Shown here: one piece after another, positions 33,051-53,700 of the stretch
How the letters are laid out: each line of letters opens with the position of its first letter
Numbering within the stretch: the first letter of the stretch is position 1
Assembly: GCF_037042905.1 (NCBI RefSeq)
Contig: NC_087251.1
Span: 25,792,001 to 25,856,000 of the forward strand
Origin: Lytechinus pictus
Taxonomy: Eukaryota
Reading direction: 5' to 3'
Length of the DNA: 64,000 nucleotides
Program-made: the position numbers and the translations under genes
The notes under the pieces: generated by a model
The model's input: the letters and a program-made list of their open reading frames with translations, nothing else
The model's database searches: none
Told to the model about the DNA's origin: nothing

Positions 33051-36000
33051 TTAAGGAAATGGAGGAGGTACGGTGGTGGTGACATTGTTACACCAAGGAT
33101 CAGGTTTACAGAACGGATCCAGGCAGAAGGTTGGGAATGAGCAGCAGGTGCAGATAGCATCGTGGACCAGACACGTCTCCGTTGCTAGGAAACAACATCC
33201 TCTGTAGTCTCCACAGCATCCCCAGTCAGACCCAAAGATGAACCAGCCATCGGTGTACTGCAGTATGGGATGGGCATTCAAAAAATAGAAGTTTTATTTA
33301 CCTATTGCATGATCATTTTTGTTATTTTAGTGAGTTAAGTGACAATTCACTACAAATATGTGAGTCGTCCATGGAGTACAAGCCAATAATGCAAAATTAA
33401 TATTTCAGGTTATAGAACTGTTATTTTGTAATTTAAAGGGATGGTCCGCGCTGAAAGTATGTATAGCTTAATAAATAGAGTAGAATTCACTGACCAAAAT
33501 GCAGAAAATTTCATCAAAATCTGATAACAAATAACAAAGTTTTCGAATTTTAAAGTTTAGCAATATTTTGTGAAACAGCCGTCATGAATATTCATTAGGT
33601 GGGCTGATGATGTCACATCTCCACTTGTTCTTTTGTATTTTATTATATGAAATTAAGTTTATTCAAATTTTTTCCTCCAAGAACTAGAAAAATTGGATTG
33701 ACAACTGATTTAGTGCATTAGATATTTATTGCTGCAACTTATTTCATTATAAGGGAGACATATTATTCACACAAGTATGAAATAATGAAAAAATTATGAT
33801 TTTATGTAATAACATAAGAAGACGGAAAGTGGAGATGTGACATCATCAGCCCACCTAATGAATATTCATGACGACTGTTTTCACAAAATATTGCTAAATT
33901 TTAAACTTTAATAACTTTATTATTTGTTATCCGATTTTGATGGAATTTTCGGCATTTTGCTCAGTGAATTCTACTCTATGTATTAAGATATAAATATTTT
34001 CAGCCCGGACCATCCCTTTAAGTAACTTGAGTGATAGGTTACTCAGAATAAAACAAGTAGAAATATTGATTGATTCTCTTACATGTAGTTCAAACCATTC
34101 TTCTCTTGTTTTCCACTTAAAATATTTTGAAAACTAAAAATAAAATTGATAAGATATATATATTTTCTTCATTTTAACTAAATAGTGTTGCCAGAACATG
34201 CTGATTAGAGAAGTGACTGTAGGGGCAAGTCATTGACAAAACACCCTAAAATATTTAATCTGCTTAAAGTTCCAGCATACTATAAACCATATCAATTCTG
34301 TTTCTACAACGAATCTGGCAGAAAAATATGTAACAATCAATAGTTTCAAAACAAAATTTACTCACTATCCATGATTTGCACCCTGGTTCAAAACAGCTGA
34401 TGTTGCCGCATGCAATCAACCTTGCTACTTCCTCAGCCAACTTGGAGTTGTTTCCAAGACCCAAGACATCCTCAACAAGCTCTATGGTTTCCTCAAGATC
34501 AAGGCCATCCTCACCAAGCAAGTGGGCTAAGGCCATAAATTGATGGGAACAATACAGAAAAAATAATGATTTATTATCATATTTCAATTGAATCAAGGTT
34601 GTATCATATTAACAGTTTTTAAACATAAACAAAATAAAGTGCCATATAATCTTGCCTATTATGATCAAATTTATGTAAAATATTAATGCACAGTTATAAC
34701 ACTAGAAATCCTGAAAATCACTATGGTGTAGAATGTAAAAATACAGCAAATTCCTTTTTTTTTTAATTAAAAAGAACTTTTATTTGGAATTCTCTTCCCA
34801 GTAACATAACAGATTTCATATCTAAATTCCTTTAAATCTAAGCTTACAAACTTTCTTTTCATACATTCAACATCTTAATTTGATTCATCCCATCATATTT
34901 CTGTTTATTTAATCAGTACAAGTCTTTATTTTATATTTTACTGTAAGGATTGCCTCGACAGAACCTTTGCTTTGTTTTTTTGCAGTTTCCCATTTCATGT
35001 TCATTTTTATGCATGTACTGTAAATAGCTTTTGTAAAATCTTAGCTTTCTTATCTTACTTGCATCTTACTATTTATCTTTGTTTATTTTTTCTTTACTTT
35101 TTGTGTGTTTTTATTGTTTTTTAAACATTATCAATGTATTTTAATGGACTTGAATAAATCAATAAATGAAACAAATGATACACACAAAAAGATTAACAGA
35201 GATCTCCATACATGTGAGCAAATAGATATTTGAGGAACAACTTTTTTTTCTTGGTGTCAAAGATTTTCAAACCCCATAAAAGTGTGATCATCTAGGGTTT
35301 GGGGTAAGGAATCATCGACATGAATTCACAAAAGACAAGAGATTGTAGCATTCATTTAACCCATTTTAAGTTTCTTATGTGCATTAAAATAGATGTAATA
35401 TTAAGCTTCTATTTACAATTGGATCAGACTCAATGTGCCCACATGTGTGTTTAACTTTGAATTTACATTGTGAATTCAAGCCATTGGGTTTAATATGCAG
35501 GGAATTAAAAGATATATTTTTTTCTCTCTTAATACGCTTAATAAGCCAGATAACATATATCTTTTCAATGCATTTAAAGAATATGAATAAAGTTGATGTA
35601 ACATTGAATAAAAAAATTACAAAGAGATGCCAGTGATTTTGCTCTCTGATTTTTTTTAAACATAGGCCTTCATGTTCACATGAAGTCCCTTCCCAATGCT
35701 GAGTTATGCAATGTTGTTTATTTGCAGATTTGGAAAAATCAAACCCAAAATGTAAACATATAAATGCAATCTGAATGGAGACTTCTCATTAGACATACCT
35801 AGATACCAGTGAATTTTCTTTACACATTCCACATCTTTGCAATCCAAGATTTTTGATGACAGGACCTTCTTCGCATGGTGGCTGTACTCCTGCTGACATG
35901 CAAACAACCCCTGAAAGTCGTAAGCCTGGTGAGCCGGACAAGCTTCCTCTGATGACACTCCCTTTGACAGACGAAGAGCTGTTCTGGCAATGGAGCCGTG

Positions 36001-36877
36001 GTAGATAAATGCTGCCCTCGCTTGGTTGAACTTGTTCTGCACATCAGAGATTGGAACCAGATACCCAATCATTGCATCATAAAGTTTGACAAGGTCAGAG
36101 AGGGCAAGTCCTGTAGATGTTGATAATGCCTGAGAGGCCAAAACCATGTCCTTGGCTGCCGATGTAATCTTTGCTTTCATATCTTGAACAAATAAAATCA
36201 AAACAAAACAACTCTGATAATATTCCAATGCAGTAATAGCTAGGTCAAAGTCCTGAACTTGATTTCATAAGTACTTTAGTCAAGGAAAACAAAAGCAAAC
36301 ACATCTACCAAATGAAATGTTTGTTTCACAAAAATCTGGGGGTTACAAAATAATACATTTTCACAATGCAGTTTCTTTTAAATCCAAAATTATTTTCAAT
36401 AGATATGACCTCTCTTTCATCTTGAATTTTTTTAATAATAAATCAAGATACATGTATTTGTTCATGGTACAAAAGAGTTACAGTGCATGGGCTCTTGTAA
36501 TCACCTGGAATTTTTCTCTGGTACAGAAATTTCTTTGGAATCTCCAGTTTTGACAGAACGAATGGCTGTCCATTCTTTCCCATTCTATCTTCTAGATCAA
36601 CCACTGAGATGATGGAAACAACATTCCCTGCTGTTTCCTCTCTAGCTTTCCACAACGTTGATAGTACTTTGGGTTCTTCATCTTGGATGTCAGAACTGAT
36701 GTTGAAGAGCAAACCTTCTGATTTGAAAATCGCTCCAATGCCTTCTGGAGAGTTGATAGTAAAGGATTGAAGCTCAACTTTCTTTCCCTTCTCCTCCTTG
36801 GAGATGAACTCTTTGGCGGATGCCACTACCACCAGCAGCACAATGGCAGTCTGAAGATGATTGATGTATTTTAGCAT
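33051..36877 (-). CDS. Uncharacterised secreted protein (~374 aa) with a C-terminal Cys-rich, PLA2-like domain
   Basis: Exons 36877-36505, 36182-35799, 34526-34366, 33257-33051. Phases 1,1,0, all GT-AG, 1125 nt with no internal stop. Signal-peptide-like start MLKYINHLQTAIVLLVVVASA-KE. Last exon is YTDGWFIFGSDWGCCGDYRGCCFLATETCLVHDAICTCCSFPTFCLDPFCKPDPWCNNVTTTVPPPFP*. There is an acceptor at 36898 upstream of the ATG, and a probable non-coding first exon with donor AAG|GTGAGC at 37374. Confidence 0.85.
33433..34021. mobile_element. Kolobok/T2-like palindromic MITE in the last intron
   Basis: TTAA|AGGGATGGTCCG.GCTGAAA ... TTTCAGCCCGGACCATCCCT|TTAA, with ~200-nt inverted arms. Confidence 0.9.
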
Positions 36878-41118: not shown

Positions 41119-44100
41119 ATGCTGTCAAGAAATCGTTTGATGTGTCTCCTACATCAAACTCTCCACCATGGAAGGCTTCAGGATGTTTACGGTACCAGTA
41201 GAGGAAAATCATTTCAAAGAATCTGTACCTGCCCTTATGACAGCTCTTCATTTCAAAGACTACAAAATTTGGGCATGAAATCAAGACATTTCCATTTGAC
41301 TGCTTGTAGAAAAGGTACAGATGGTTACAGTTCTACAGGTAAGGTGGATTCAACTCTGAGTGATGGCTCTGAAACAAAAGAGAGTTATCTTGAAGCAAGC
41401 AGAAAAGGTGTTCTGAAGGGCAGACGGACACTCTCCCCAATGGAAAGAATTGGTGGTATGATAATGAATAACCCTGAAACTGAGGAAAGAACTAAAAATC
41501 AGAATACTACTAGTGACTCCAAAACTTCTGGTATCAGGGATTCCAAAGATGTCATCAATGCCGATGAAATAAAGTCAGCTCAGGTATGTGACTCCAGTCA
41601 TGTGCAAAGATTTAGAACATCGGTAGATGGTGAAACTTCTGTGAAAGTGAGTGACTTTGATAAAGCCCAGCACCAGGGGCCTCCTCTCGTAGATGGAGAA
41701 TACATCATTATCACCAGAGAGAACTTGAAGAGGCAGGAGAAACTTGTTCGCCTGATCAAGCTTGATGCTTCCCAGGACTTCAAGTGCAAGTTTGGTAACC
41801 TACGGCATGCAGATATCGTCGGACATCAGAGTGGCAGTGTCTTTGTGACTGATATTGGCATTGAGCTTCTGATTAGGCGACCAAGTCTGGATGAATATGT
41901 GCTCTACATGAAGAGGCATCCAACCATTGCATACCCAAAGGTAATGACACAAGGATTGATTGCTTTGAGCATATGAACAATAACCTTGGGAATATTCTGC
42001 TATTCTAATTTTTTTCAATGGTGAATGTTCGATATTTTTGTATTGACAACTGGTTTGTATATATTTTTAGGGTGATTACCCTGTATTGATATTCACACTG
42101 CAGAAATCTTCAACTTAAGTACCCCCACCCCCTCCTGAAAACTACATTGTAAAAACCCCTTACGACTATAGGAATTTGGGAGAGATAAGGGGCTCACTGC
42201 ATACTCCCTGATTATCAATTTTCTACCAGTGATACACTGCCAATATTATCTATATTGCTGATTTTTTTGTTTTGCTTGACATAGGATTGTTGTACAATGC
42301 TAATGATGATAGATGCTTATCCTGGTGATGTGGTCTTAGAAGCGGGTTCAGGGTCTGGAGCTATGACGTTGTTCCTTTCTAGAGCAGGTAGGAACAATTA
42401 GTGATGATAAGACTAATGATCATATCATTGATAGTGATAATTATGAATAATCCTGATGATGACAATGATAATGATAAAATAATGATAATAATAAATCATA
42501 ATATTGATAATAATTGTATTTAGCTTGGTAGAAATAGCAACAAGTAATGTATACAACTGGATCCAAAATATAATTGTTCATTTATTGCTGACAGGTAAAA
42601 GAAATACTTCACTATTAGGTTCCAGGGAAGAAAAAAAAATCACAATTCAAATTACTTAGTAAACAGGTATATATTTTCATAGACCAAAAGCTTCCATCTG
42701 TTGCTTGTTCCAATGGACTACACCTGGCTTGTTCCACTGGCTCCGGAGAAATTTTATAAAGTTAAAAAAAAATTAAAAATTTCCTCCAAACAGATGGATT
42801 TCAGCTGTCTAAAAAAAAATTAAGAATAATTGCTATATGTTCCAGTTTCTTCGTTCTCATTTCTTAGAAGGCAAGCTTTTGTCTACACCTTCCATTTCTG
42901 TGAAAGTTTAAGCCAACTGATCAGTCACACATTTGCCTGGTGCCACCTGCAATCTTGCAATGAGTTGGTAGAAGCTTGAACATTTTCCAACCAGTAAATT
43001 ATGTCTGTATTACTCACCATTTATCTTTTCTTTTTCTTTTTTTACAATTCTTTGAAGTTCTACAAGGCTAGCTTGAACAATTTATTATTTAATAATCCCC
43101 AACCAATGAGAGATTTCTGAATTAATTGCTTTTTGTTTAAATATTTCTTTTTGAATTCTTTATTGCAGTTGGACACAATGGCCAAGTTCTTTCCTTTGAC
43201 AGAGAACGGAACCATCAGGTCAGAGCGGAGAAGAACCTCAGCCTGTGGCAGAAATCCTATGACATCAGCCATGAAGTCAAGTGGCCCCAGAATGTCTTAT
43301 TTTACTCCTGTAGATTGCAGGACTGTGGACAATATATCAAAGATACTCAAGTGGATGGGGTATGATGATTCTTTGTGCATGGTATATCCTTTAACCCTCT
43401 CCCCTTCCCCTCCCTCTTCCCTCCCCCATCCCTCTCCCTCTTCCCCTGGGAAAAAAATTGAATGAGTGAAAAATCTGTATTAGATAACAATATTCCTGAC
43501 ACGACAAAGACAAATTTTTCTTAGTACACATAGATCTTAACATTCCAAATATTCATGTATATCTGGTCATAGTGACCATTTCATTCTGGGTTTCAACTAT
43601 TACACCCTTACATCATGGTTTCCAAAGGGGCAGGGTTATTTCTTGATTCCATGGTTTGGCAGAAGTTGCCCTGATGGAAAGCCGGCACATTCAAGACAAA
43701 CTTAAACCTATAAAACCTCAAACATAATTGTGAATAATCCCGATCCTGATACAAATAAAATACCCTCTAACAATCTTAATCCTAAAAAATATATTTTGTA
43801 TGTTCATATGATATGTTAGGCCATTTGAGAAGTAATTTATTGTAATTGATAATTGCAAGAAATCTGAATGTTTATGTGTAGTAGAATGTTGTTAATGCAC
43901 CAGTATGATATTCAATATATTCATTTTCAATACAGGCAATTATTGATATGGAGGAACCTTCCAGAGTGATGTCTACTATGTCTCAAAGACTTAAACCAGG
44001 GAAGGCAATGGCTGTGTATGTGGCAAAGTAAGTTGCTCTTGAAAACCTTATCCAACTCTATTTTCCCCTTAACACAACTTCATTCTTCGAAACTGAAAAT

Positions 44101-50738: not shown

Positions 50739-53700
50739 TCACTCATCTCTGGCTGCCCAGATGGACGCTTCCTCAAAGTTGAAGTCCCCATGACCTGAAA
50801 TTAACAGATAGATTGTGAAAAACACTTGTTTTATTAATTATTGAAAAACAGACATTGTGAGGATAATGGGTTTTCATGTGAAAATGTAAACAATTTAAGA
50901 ATGATAATGTCCCATCTTCATTGTGCAACTTCTGCTGATGCAGTTTAACATGACTGATGATCCAATATAGCCATATTTAGGTCATTCATGACATCATGAG
51001 TAATTTTACAAAGGGTTATGAAAACTGGTACACAACCATGGACTAACAACAAAGTTAGCATCTGAGGAATGTTTCCACAAAGAATGAAATGTACCTTTCA
51101 TAGGAAGCTCTTCCAACTTAGGATACGATGAGCTGTCCATTTCCTCAATGCTTCCTGCTGAATCAGTAGAGCTATCTGTGCATGATGATAGGTAGAGAAA
51201 GCCACTATCTGGACTATGATGAATTTCAATGTCAAAGGCAAATCCCCCTGCTTTCTCACATGCTCTGCAGTGAACAGGTGTTGCATCAGGTCCCATAGGA
51301 ATGGCCTCTTCATCATCGTCATAGTCTGGGTATTTCCTGACAGCTCCGGCATGGTGCGGCATTCGTTCACGTTTCCAGATGATATGGTCTGGGACCAAGC
51401 TCATAACCTACATTGAAACATAAAAGATGGTTAATGGTCTGGTGGCTCAATGTGTTCATAAAACTACCATTTCATGAACATCCCTTCTGATGAAACCTTC
51501 TGCCTTCTAATGTAATACTTGGGATATTAGAATGGAAAATGGTAAAGATATTTTGATGAAATTCCCAGTGTTATGCTTGTTTTATTTTTTCTCTTTTTAT
51601 TAAAATCATCATTTCTCCCAATCATGCGAACTTGACTCAATCCCAACAGATTTGGTTAAGAAATGTGCCACAGTATTGGCCCGTCATTACTAGAATAGAA
51701 AATCCAAGTCTTAGTTTGGGAGTTGTCCCACAGGTCTGTATAAAAGCTGTCATCCATCCGACGCTGAAAAAAATCAGGCTTAGATCAAGAGTGTCTGAAA
51801 AATTACCACCCAATATCAAACAGTAAACTGCTGGATAGAGTTGTTTTCTCACAGTTAACATATTTACAAGAGAATGAGTAATTTGACCCATGTCAATTTG
51901 CCTACAAGCTTGGTCATAGTGTAGAAACACTACAAGTCAACTTAGTATCTTTCGTGAAATGGATAATGGTAACATTACAGCTCTTATTATGCTTGATATG
52001 AGTTCAGCATATGATACAGTAGATCACACCATCCTAATTGAAAGGCTGAACTCATTAGGTATCAAGGGGACTGCCCTTCTTGCTTGGTTCATGTCCTATC
52101 TATCAGAACGATCTCAATATGTCAGAATCGGTAGTTCTATCTCAGGTTCAATTACTCTAAGGTTTGGTGTACCCCAGGGCTCTGTAGGAGGTCCACTGCT
52201 CTATATGCAACCGATCAACAAGATATTTCGTAAACATGGCATTAAATACCATTGTTATTCTGATGACATACAACTCTATTTGTCCATGTTTTGATTTTCT
52301 CCCATTTAGATTTCTCAAACTCATTGTTTTGTAGCCTCCCACAAAAAGGTTAGACAAAACTTCAACATCTACAAAACTCTGCTGCCTGTCTCCTAACCTA
52401 CAAAAAAAATATGACTCCATCTATCCAATCCTCCAGTCCTTAAATTGGCTGCCTTTTAAAAAAAAGAATCACCTTCAAAATTCTTCTAATTCTACATCAT
52501 TTAGTTTATTCTCTCTCCCCCACATATCTGCGCAGCTCTATCTCAAAATATCAGCCTTCACGTAGTCTCCGCTCATCATCCGATGCTCTATTGCTCCAGA
52601 CACCCAGAACAAAGCACAAATGAGGGGACCATGCATTCTCTGTTATAGGACCAAAGCTATGGAATCAACTGCCTATCCAATTACGCCAAATTTCATCAAC
52701 AGAAACATTCCCAACTGAAAACTTATTTGTTCCTCTCCCATTAACAGTTTAGTGTGTTTTATTCAGAATTCATACTTCAAAATTCTATTCATTTTTTTCT
52801 ATTGCTTATGTGTATGTTTATTGATCTTGATTTGGAGCGCCCTGAGCACCGAAAGGTGAACCTGTATGCTATATAAGTAGCCACCATTATTATTTTTCTG
52901 GAGTTGACTTGACCTTTGAATCCGAGGCCATGGGATGCAATAGCCCTGGATGCCCTGTTAGCTTTCCTCAATGCTCCTCTTATACTCCTTTTTTTATTCT
53001 TCCCATTTGTGTTGTAATATAGGCATATGCTTGCCCCAAAAGTATAAAAGAATAAGGCCTGTTGATTGCTATACAAATTGGTATTAGTTATTCAGAGCAT
53101 TTGTCCCAAGATGAATATTAAGTCAGTAAAGGGCTAGATACAGAAACTGAAATTGAGATGGAAGAAAATTTTCGACGTAGAAGTGGTAATAAATATCTAT
53201 GTATAATAATCTGGTCTGCAAAAATTTATTTTAATTTAAAATGCATCATTTATACCTCTTCACAACACTTTCTACTGACTGCAGCCCTGTACTGGATAGT
53301 CCTTAGGAGTCTGTCTCTCTTGCGCAGAAAGCCAGTATAAGTGTTTCTCCAGTTCCTTCCCAATGCCCAAGGGAAGATATTGTACTTGTCATCCTCTTCA
53401 TCTTCTTCCATATCACTTGCTAAATACCTGAAGGATTATGCATGAACAGGTACACTGTTACTCCCATAAATGATTCAAAGGATACTTGAAGATCAGATAT
53501 AGAACTACATGTATCTTGAGTGATGTTGAATCCCTGAAATCATGAACAGTTTGTGGAAGATTGACCCATTCTGCCATGATGCTACATGAATACTCTGTAT
53601 TTTTAGATTGTTGCAGATTTTTAGCTATTCACTGTAAATTATGAATAAGACAAAATTATTTGTTCAACATTTTTCCCTAAATAATTCCTAGTTTGGGGAT

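Follow-up and report, generated by a model that had tools for sequence, protein, structure and literature searches.

The 64,000-nucleotide stretch of the Lytechinus pictus genome analysed here (NCBI RefSeq assembly GCF_037042905.1, contig NC_087251.1, positions 25,792,001 to 25,856,000 of the forward strand; hereafter the window, with positions counted from its first letter) contains, on the minus strand between 33051 and 36877, a gene encoding a secreted two-domain protein in which a predicted signal peptide precedes an N-terminal domain of roughly 270 amino acids (aa) and a C-terminal disulfide-rich domain of roughly 75 aa, referred to below as the knot. The protein belongs to a family that is undescribed, being without a curated family, a similar solved structure or any paper in the literature searched, and profile comparison indicates that it is homologous over both domains to lipoproteins of the Bacteroidota. 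In these bacteria the family genes are arranged in a manner suggestive of toxin–immunity cassettes, and we give an even chance to the proposal that the sea urchin protein is itself a toxin-like secreted effector, probably one acting at membranes or at the cell envelope.

Joining of the four exons yields an uninterrupted frame of 374 codons plus a stop (1125 nt), and all exon borders are canonical GT/AG, in agreement with the four-exon open reading frame (ORF) proposed in a preliminary description of this DNA, which was made from the sequence alone. A short charged stretch opens the N-terminus and is followed by a hydrophobic core of 11 residues, with Ala-Ser-Ala preceding residue 22; residues 8–21 form the hydrophobicity maximum of the whole protein. 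The signal peptide, also anticipated in that description, was called by eye from the hydrophobicity profile and the translation, and is conserved in orthologues. Fourteen of the 18 cysteines lie within the last 83 residues, at residues 292–362, the number 14 being that given earlier for the C-terminal region, and the motif singled out earlier is found as W318-G-C-C-G322, followed after exactly 15 residues by H338-D339. No second copy of the gene was found in the window by tblastn. The features of the gene are as follows.

33051–36877, minus strand: whole coding region, ATG to stop (from splice sites, open frame and identity to L. variegatus LOC121418730).
36505–36877, minus strand: exon 1, signal peptide and beta-sheet part of the N-terminal domain; aa 1–124 and the first base of codon 125, with the junction contiguous in homologues.
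36815–36877, minus strand: predicted signal peptide, aa 1–21, with Ala-Ser-Ala before the predicted cut (from hydrophobicity and orthologue conservation).
35799–36182, minus strand: exon 2, helical part of the N-terminal domain (predicted helices 126–294, mostly of high confidence).
34366–34526, minus strand: exon 3, final helices of the N-terminal domain and beginning of the Cys-rich domain.
34366–34416, minus strand: exon-3 portion of the C-terminal disulfide-rich domain, aa 290–306, with C292, C297 and C302.
33051–33257, minus strand: exon 4, including the stop.
33087–33257, minus strand: exon-4 portion of the C-terminal disulfide-rich domain, aa 307–363, with 11 Cys.
33198–33224, minus strand: Gly-rich loop W318–G326, with the first vicinal Cys pair and Tyr324 (from column conservation).
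33159–33164, minus strand: His338-Asp339 dyad, on the sole predicted helix of the knot domain (from conservation and structure models).
33051–33086, minus strand: Thr/Pro-rich C-terminal tail, aa 364–374, and stop; poorly conserved.

Exon 4 alone, used as the query of an exhaustive HMMER search against 1.84 billion representatives, returned 74 proteins at E ≤ 1e-3, the best at 9.5e-33; a word-indexed protein search added few further members. The animal members with a named source are from echinoids (Lytechinus, Strongylocentrotus and Diadema), the brittle star Amphiura filiformis, the hemichordate Glandiceps talaboti, the bivalves Solemya, Mya, Mizuhopecten and Dreissena, the limpet Patella caerulea (a gastropod) and the brachiopod Lingula anatina, and the named bacterial sources are the Bacteroidota Sphingobacterium and Spirosoma validum. 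All are named ‘uncharacterized’ or ‘hypothetical’, save for one composition-driven automatic label on a Mizuhopecten protein. Neither Pfam nor NCBIfam gave a family for the four exon translations or for the relatives tested, and the exon translations likewise gave no match among PDB sequences, in keeping with the earlier remark that about 280 of its residues could not be assigned to any family. When one genome of each bacterial and archaeal species was scanned, 46 loci were located in 46 genomes, all of them Bacteroidota (Flavobacteriales, Sphingobacteriales, Chitinophagales, Cytophagales and Marinifilaceae); this number is a lower bound, since the scan employed one fixed peptide pattern. Thus, of the earlier suggestion of an undescribed invertebrate disulfide-rich family, the first and last parts stand, and the confinement to invertebrates does not. 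When a profile of 12 full-length animal proteins was aligned to one of 26 Bacteroidota proteins, hhalign returned a probability of 99.95% (E 8.7e-38 over 264 columns), and the alignment extends from residue 40 to residue 363, so that both domains are shared.

Three architectures can be distinguished among the members. The first, an N-terminal domain followed by the knot, is that of the window protein and is found in echinoderms, the hemichordate, other animal-like contigs and the Bacteroidota; the second comprises a signal peptide, a short propeptide and the knot, in about 110–150 aa; and the third, from bivalves, comprises a signal peptide, the knot and a long acidic tail rich in glycosylation sequons. 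The knot domain by itself, without the N-terminal domain, is found in molluscs and a brachiopod. In some animal members a signal peptide, a dibasic site and the knot follow one another, and a dibasic (Lys/Arg-Arg) site lies no more than 45 residues before the knot in 22 of 101 members (for example P0036, P0038, P0071 and P0078), a pattern suggesting that in some lineages cleavage by a proprotein convertase may set the knot free. The long pro-region put forward in the preliminary description is accordingly plausible for some relatives with such a site just before the knot, but the window protein has none. The knot is near the N-terminus in P0005, P0008, P0010, P0013–P0015, P0017, P0020–P0023, P0025 and P0035, which are from bivalves and other contigs; in these a basic cleavage-like site often precedes the knot, and the long acidic sequon-rich tail ends with a recurrent short motif of the Gly-Ser-Gly-Glu/Asp type. 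The many paralogue-like proteins of this form suggest a lineage-specific expansion.

The gene context of the bacterial members provides an indication of function. Most of them carry a lipoprotein-type signal at the N-terminus, and 37 of the 50 family genes at the 46 Bacteroidota loci have a small membrane-protein gene directly downstream on the same strand. A partner was scored when the same-strand downstream ORF encoded ≤135 aa with two or three strongly hydrophobic segments, and the same test was positive for 11 of 254 other long ORFs from the same loci (Fisher p 9e-27). The membrane partner is about 95 aa long, has three hydrophobic segments in most cases and is usually separated from the family gene by −3 to 45 bp. 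At least 21 of the partners form a single family by hidden Markov model (14 seeds plus 7 non-seed matches at E 1e-12 to 6e-8), and ten of them that were compared with Pfam gave no family. Where the knot is at the C-terminus, as in the window protein, the membrane partner follows 35 of 42 genes.

In a metagenome-assembled genome (MAG) of Fluviicola sp. (locus L033, 2479–5052) there is a full-length family gene together with three small membrane-protein genes and two knot-only ORFs. These make up three tandem units, each consisting of a knot and a membrane gene, that recur every 533 bp or so and are 75–90% identical; what is repeated is the 3′ part of the full-length gene together with the membrane gene behind it, so that each knot-only ORF has a membrane gene of its own. 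By analogy, the array looks like a set of extra toxin-tip and immunity cassettes. At a second locus (L037) two partner genes stand in tandem, and with more than one knot in only 3 of the 46 loci, extra units are uncommon. A short effector, a small downstream partner and extra tip-plus-partner units together follow the pattern of toxin–immunity cassettes (PMC3482391). The word toxin was among those used for the protein in the preliminary description; what now speaks for it is indirect, namely the downstream membrane gene and the tandem units of the bacterial loci.

Some further observations were made on these loci. The bacterial long forms (430–490 aa; L026, L039, L047, L049, L051 and L053) have an additional Tyr-rich region of at least 100 aa after the knot, and two of the loci, L026 and L039, contain two family genes each. 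In a Sphingobacterium MAG (L002, 1–7700) the family gene has as neighbours a type I restriction-modification system, a gene for an AAA ATPase and several transposase fragments, in surroundings that are variable and island-like. A charged tail is a feature expected of holins, and a holin or lysis role for the membrane partner was rejected, such a tail being absent and the toxin having its own signal peptide. PADLOC, run on six members, gave only a weak Csn2-like match in one protein, which we judged to be due to chance.

Small membrane immunity proteins are known for pore-forming colicins, and bacteriocin and polymorphic-toxin cassettes in general resemble the bacterial loci in having a C-terminal toxin module with a small integral-membrane gene directly downstream on the same strand, in the presence of tandem units of tip and partner, and in a patchy distribution among genomes, sometimes beside mobile-element genes. 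They differ in that no component of the present system, whether putative toxin domain, N-terminal domain or membrane partner, belongs to a curated family, in that delivery here would be by a plain lipoprotein signal, and in that the pairing is here a putative one, read from gene order. Toxins directed at lipid head groups likewise have transmembrane immunity proteins (PMC12419801). The Tox-PLA2 domain (PMC3482391) is comparable in being a lipid-directed toxin domain, present in eukaryotes as well as bacteria, in which a Cys stands two positions ahead of the catalytic His, but it is all-alpha with motifs of its own, and its carriers are filamentous proteins or proteins delivered by the type VI secretion system, whereas the carriers of the present family are short lipoproteins. 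For the animal genes, bacterial toxins domesticated by animals offer a comparison, an example being the dae amidase genes found in ticks and in other eukaryotes. As in that case, a secreted putative effector is found in bacteria and in scattered animals, where its gene bears introns and is under purifying selection; unlike that case, the animal branch is here an old one, with echinoids, an ophiuroid, a hemichordate and lophotrochozoans.

The conservation of the knot was determined by column over 75 homologues. G319, C320, C335, D339, C342, C345, C351 and C356 are present in 100% of these, C321, Y324 and C328 in 99%, H338 in 97% (73/75, against 75/75 for D339), G315 in 95%, and G322 and G326 in 92%; W311 is present in 68%, and position 350 is aromatic. 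The distance from G319 to the His is identical in 73 of 74 members. The invariant core comprises eight Cys. Outside it, C344 and C362 are both present in 42 members and both absent from 33, without exception, and to judge from this co-occurrence they almost certainly pair with each other; C292–C297 (phi 0.91) and C302–C327 (phi 0.56) behave in a similar manner. Structures were predicted with AlphaFold2 (AF2) for exon 4 of the window (79 aligned sequences; predicted local distance difference test score, pLDDT, 84) and for the L. variegatus protein P0075, which is 94% identical to the window protein and was used for the full-length searches and folding (66 aligned sequences; pLDDT 80 overall and 84–93 over most of the knot). 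In both models the knot is compact; apart from some bridges of one residue each, it has only one helix, E333–I341, which bears the His-Asp dyad. The C-terminal tail is of low occupancy and low identity among homologues, and its end has a pLDDT below 50 in both models.

As to the long pro-region mentioned in the preliminary description, the N-terminal region of the family forms a conserved domain of its own. In the AF2 model it consists of a five-stranded sheet (residues 35–114) followed by a helical bundle (residues 126–294). The residues invariant in the animal alignment include Y185, H186, R195, G199, C206, Y212, F218 and C220, all encoded by exon 2; in the mixed animal–bacterial alignment only A134, R195 and F218 are nearly invariant within this domain, and the Bacteroidota alignment retains F185, E189 and D190 (in its own numbering). 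Searches for structural relatives gave little. Sequence and profile searches of the PDB returned chance-level matches only, to a MYND zinc finger (E 0.2) and to cohesin helices (E 0.013). Foldseek found no match to the model of the knot among 350,542 PDB chains at E ≤ 10, an absence which, Foldseek being weak on small knots, is strong though short of absolute. The best PDB match to the full-length model had an E-value of 0.067 and a TM-score of about 0.1, and a search of the viral models of BFVD with the knot yielded nothing relevant (E >4).

Our current working hypothesis is that the knot would be the effector module of the family proteins and that, in the Bacteroidota, the knot gene and the small membrane gene would encode a toxin tip and its cognate immunity protein. 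As the partner appears to be wholly membrane-embedded, the toxin would be expected to act at or in the target membrane or envelope, and the sea urchin protein would then most likely be a host-encoded secreted effector of bacterial-toxin type with a defensive or antimicrobial role. More speculatively, His338-Asp339, the Gly-rich loop and the Tyr might form a small metal-assisted hydrolytic site whose substrate is a lipid or is linked to one, and which would resemble the site of secreted phospholipase A2 (PLA2) by analogy and not by homology; from the conservation pattern, catalysis by the His-Asp pair is possible. The proposal in its fullest form is that the knot is a new minimal secreted His-Asp hydrolase fold (about 50 core residues and four core disulfides) convergent with PLA2, that it serves as a membrane- or envelope-directed toxin tip of the Bacteroidota with a dedicated membrane immunity protein, and that it was exchanged with marine invertebrates, in which it is kept as a conserved secreted defence factor; this combination is advanced tentatively, as one that we would ourselves call doubtful.

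Several observations weigh against such an interpretation. Candidate acidic partners of the dyad are inconstant, Asp317 being conserved in only 81% and Asp359 in only 68% of the 75 homologues, and there is no conserved second acidic residue or second helix backing the His, unlike the situation in PLA2. Two natural homologues, P0029 and P0061, have Lys and Tyr in place of the His; they depart at other conserved positions too, so that on their sequences they may be inactive or relaxed copies. Among the bacterial genes, those encoding a tail of at least 100 aa after the knot mostly have no partner (2 of 8 do), and the immunity role of the membrane protein is read, by analogy, from gene order alone. 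The literature search gave no paper on the activity of any member. In the animals, the genes are without an adjacent membrane partner, a tblastn search of the window for one being negative, and the long acidic, glycosylation-rich tails of the bivalve proteins would fit a role in the extracellular matrix. The role in animals may have changed since the split from the bacterial genes.

Whatever its function, this is a new family, and possibly a new fold, which occurs in Bacteroidota and at least four animal phyla and has neither a Pfam or NCBIfam entry nor a similar structure; its conserved N-terminal domain is also without structural relatives. If catalytic, the knot would count as one of the smallest hydrolase domains known and as a case of convergence with PLA2. 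If the working hypothesis is true, the bacterial cassettes would add a new toxin–immunity pair to interbacterial conflict among Bacteroidota, and the animal genes would represent an old, intron-bearing toxin of bacterial type in marine invertebrates, with a bearing on echinoderm and mollusc immunity. The kind of system is known, both as toxin tips with immunity genes and as toxins of bacterial type that animals possess; for neither of the two domains, nor for the membrane partner, did the searches give a curated family, a similar structure or a paper.

The main alternative is that the knot is a non-catalytic binding or structural module, with glycan, mineral, metal or a receptor as its target, that the urchin protein is a component of a matrix or of an adhesion system in which the His-Asp pair and the Tyr bind a ligand or metal, and that the bacterial partner is an anchoring or assembly factor. 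We consider this unlikely, if far from negligible. It is favoured chiefly by the bivalve proteins, in which the knot is joined to the long acidic sequon-rich tails; conserved aromatic residues (W311, Y324 and the aromatic residue at 350) on a compact disulfide scaffold are common in modules of this kind, Bacteroidota surface lipoproteins are often glycan binders, and no enzyme family was matched. It is opposed by the tandem units of knot and membrane gene, which are a signature of toxin–immunity systems and not of adhesins, and by the invariant pattern itself, since an Asp without exception, a near-absolute His, three Gly and a Tyr at fixed spacing from bacteria to deuterostomes are more like an active site. 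The standalone form, with signal peptide, propeptide, dibasic site and knot, moreover resembles the precursors of toxins and antimicrobial peptides.

A divergent secreted PLA2 fold was the first possibility raised in the preliminary description. On this view the Gly-rich loop would serve as a Ca2+ site and His338 as general base, and a pro-region would account for residues 1–290. The general likeness is real. Secreted PLA2s (groups I, II and III) are also small, secreted and disulfide-rich, with a His-Asp on a helix that follows a disulfide-held Gly-rich loop and with a Tyr, and they act as toxins and immune effectors, PLA2 domains being used as toxins in bacteria and animals alike (PMC3482391). 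When the refuting outcomes named in the preliminary description were looked for, the dyad proved to be conserved (His 73/75 and Asp 75/75 homologues), it lies on a predicted helix at a fixed distance from the loop, and no match to a well-described unrelated family came to light. Beyond this, however, nothing specific to PLA2 was found. No PLA2 model of Pfam matched the four exons (E ≤ 10), ten full-length relatives (E ≤ 1) or 79 members (E ≤ 10), and PLA2 was not among the matches from the PDB sequence and profile searches. The motifs that were compared are those quoted in the preliminary description and those printed in the table of PMC3482391. The calcium-loop motif G-C-x-C-G occurs in 0 of 76 members, the family loop having instead two adjacent Cys, a Gly, a variable residue and a Tyr; the catalytic motif C-C-x2-H-D-x-C also occurs in 0 of 76, and C-x2-H-D-x2-C, with its different placement and spacing of Cys, in 74 of 76; and neither of the Tox-PLA2 motifs, D-x-C-[ST] and C-x2-H-x3-Y-x-N, was matched by any of 105 members. 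A PLA2 has about 120 aa, a three-helix core and a second catalytic Asp, whereas the knot has about 55–75 aa, one helix and no such Asp, and is attached to a conserved N-terminal domain of 270 aa. No PLA2 was present among the best 50 full-length Foldseek matches listed, and the knot itself, as described above, matched no PDB chain and nothing relevant in BFVD. We therefore reject membership of the secreted PLA2 family on motifs, profiles and fold, and regard a true but highly divergent PLA2 as improbable. The resemblance would seem, from sequence and models, to be one of logic: a Gly-rich loop tethered by disulfides is combined with a Tyr and with a helix-borne His-Asp, all of them invariant, as would be anticipated for a small active site assisted by a metal, and PLA2-like chemistry is possible on these grounds even though membership fails.

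That the protein might be a secreted signalling ligand is suggested by its layout only, a helical N-terminal domain with a Cys-rich C-terminal domain being broadly reminiscent of Wnt-type ligands. The helical core of Wnt has toxin relatives among prokaryotes. The conversion of a toxin fold of bacteria into a ligand of animals is documented (PMC12419801). Against this, no Wnt or other ligand family was returned by the Pfam, PDB sequence, profile or fold searches, which makes the idea very improbable, and a Wnt- or Lipocone-type identity was rejected in the absence of any Wnt match in Pfam, in PDB profiles or among the Foldseek matches listed.

It is important that the reality of the gene be considered. 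The window model is 94.4% identical from end to end to the independently annotated L. variegatus LOC121418730 (P0075, 376 aa) and 77% identical to LOC100890657 of Strongylocentrotus purpuratus, both of which are annotated as ‘uncharacterized’. Compared with the L. variegatus chromosome, the window is collinear throughout, introns included, with a nucleotide identity of about 88–89%, and the orthologue has the identical four exons, in agreement as to junctions, start and stop; in six homologues the sequence runs without a break across each of the three junctions. Over 309 ungapped codons, synonymous divergence from L. variegatus (dS) is 0.113 and nonsynonymous divergence (dN) 0.026, giving a dN/dS of 0.23, and the divergence of the introns equals dS. 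The first 58 codons of exon 4 contain three synonymous and no nonsynonymous differences. The urchin gene is thus kept under purifying selection. A further homologue, P0076 (53% identical), is encoded by an uninterrupted ORF on a contig assembled from sequencing run SRR6173504, where it lies head to head with an uninterrupted ORF of GCD14/TRMT61 type. This contig reads like spliced RNA and so supports the splice model. The same neighbour is present in the window as the ORF at 41119–41976 (+), head to head with the gene and about 4.2 kb from it, and gene order is therefore conserved; this ORF is the first exon of a TRMT61B-type tRNA methyltransferase, the accompanying match to TR61B FKBP-like being weak and sub-threshold (E 2e-4). 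On a contig of another echinoid (L008) the head-to-head pair is 258 bp apart. That the gene is an artefact, whether of mis-joined ORFs, a pseudogene or bacterial contamination, is scarcely credible, since almost nothing speaks for it, whereas canonical introns with an intact frame, the shared exons with introns diverging at the rate of dS, the dN/dS value, the conserved neighbour and the uninterrupted orthologous ORF all contradict it, contamination being rejected specifically by the introns and the conserved synteny.

Three other features of the window may be recorded. A run of 197 N at 636–832 represents an assembly gap or a mask. A reverse-transcriptase fragment of a retroelement lies at 51959–52294 (+), with an RVT_1 match at E 1e-13. 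Finally, intron 3 of the gene contains an element of about 600 bp (33428–34026) resembling a miniature inverted-repeat transposable element, with long terminal inverted repeats whose arms show 89% complementarity over 148 nt and 98% over 54 nt; the segment 33437–34016 is absent from the orthologous L. variegatus intron, which points to a recent insertion or a lineage-specific loss.

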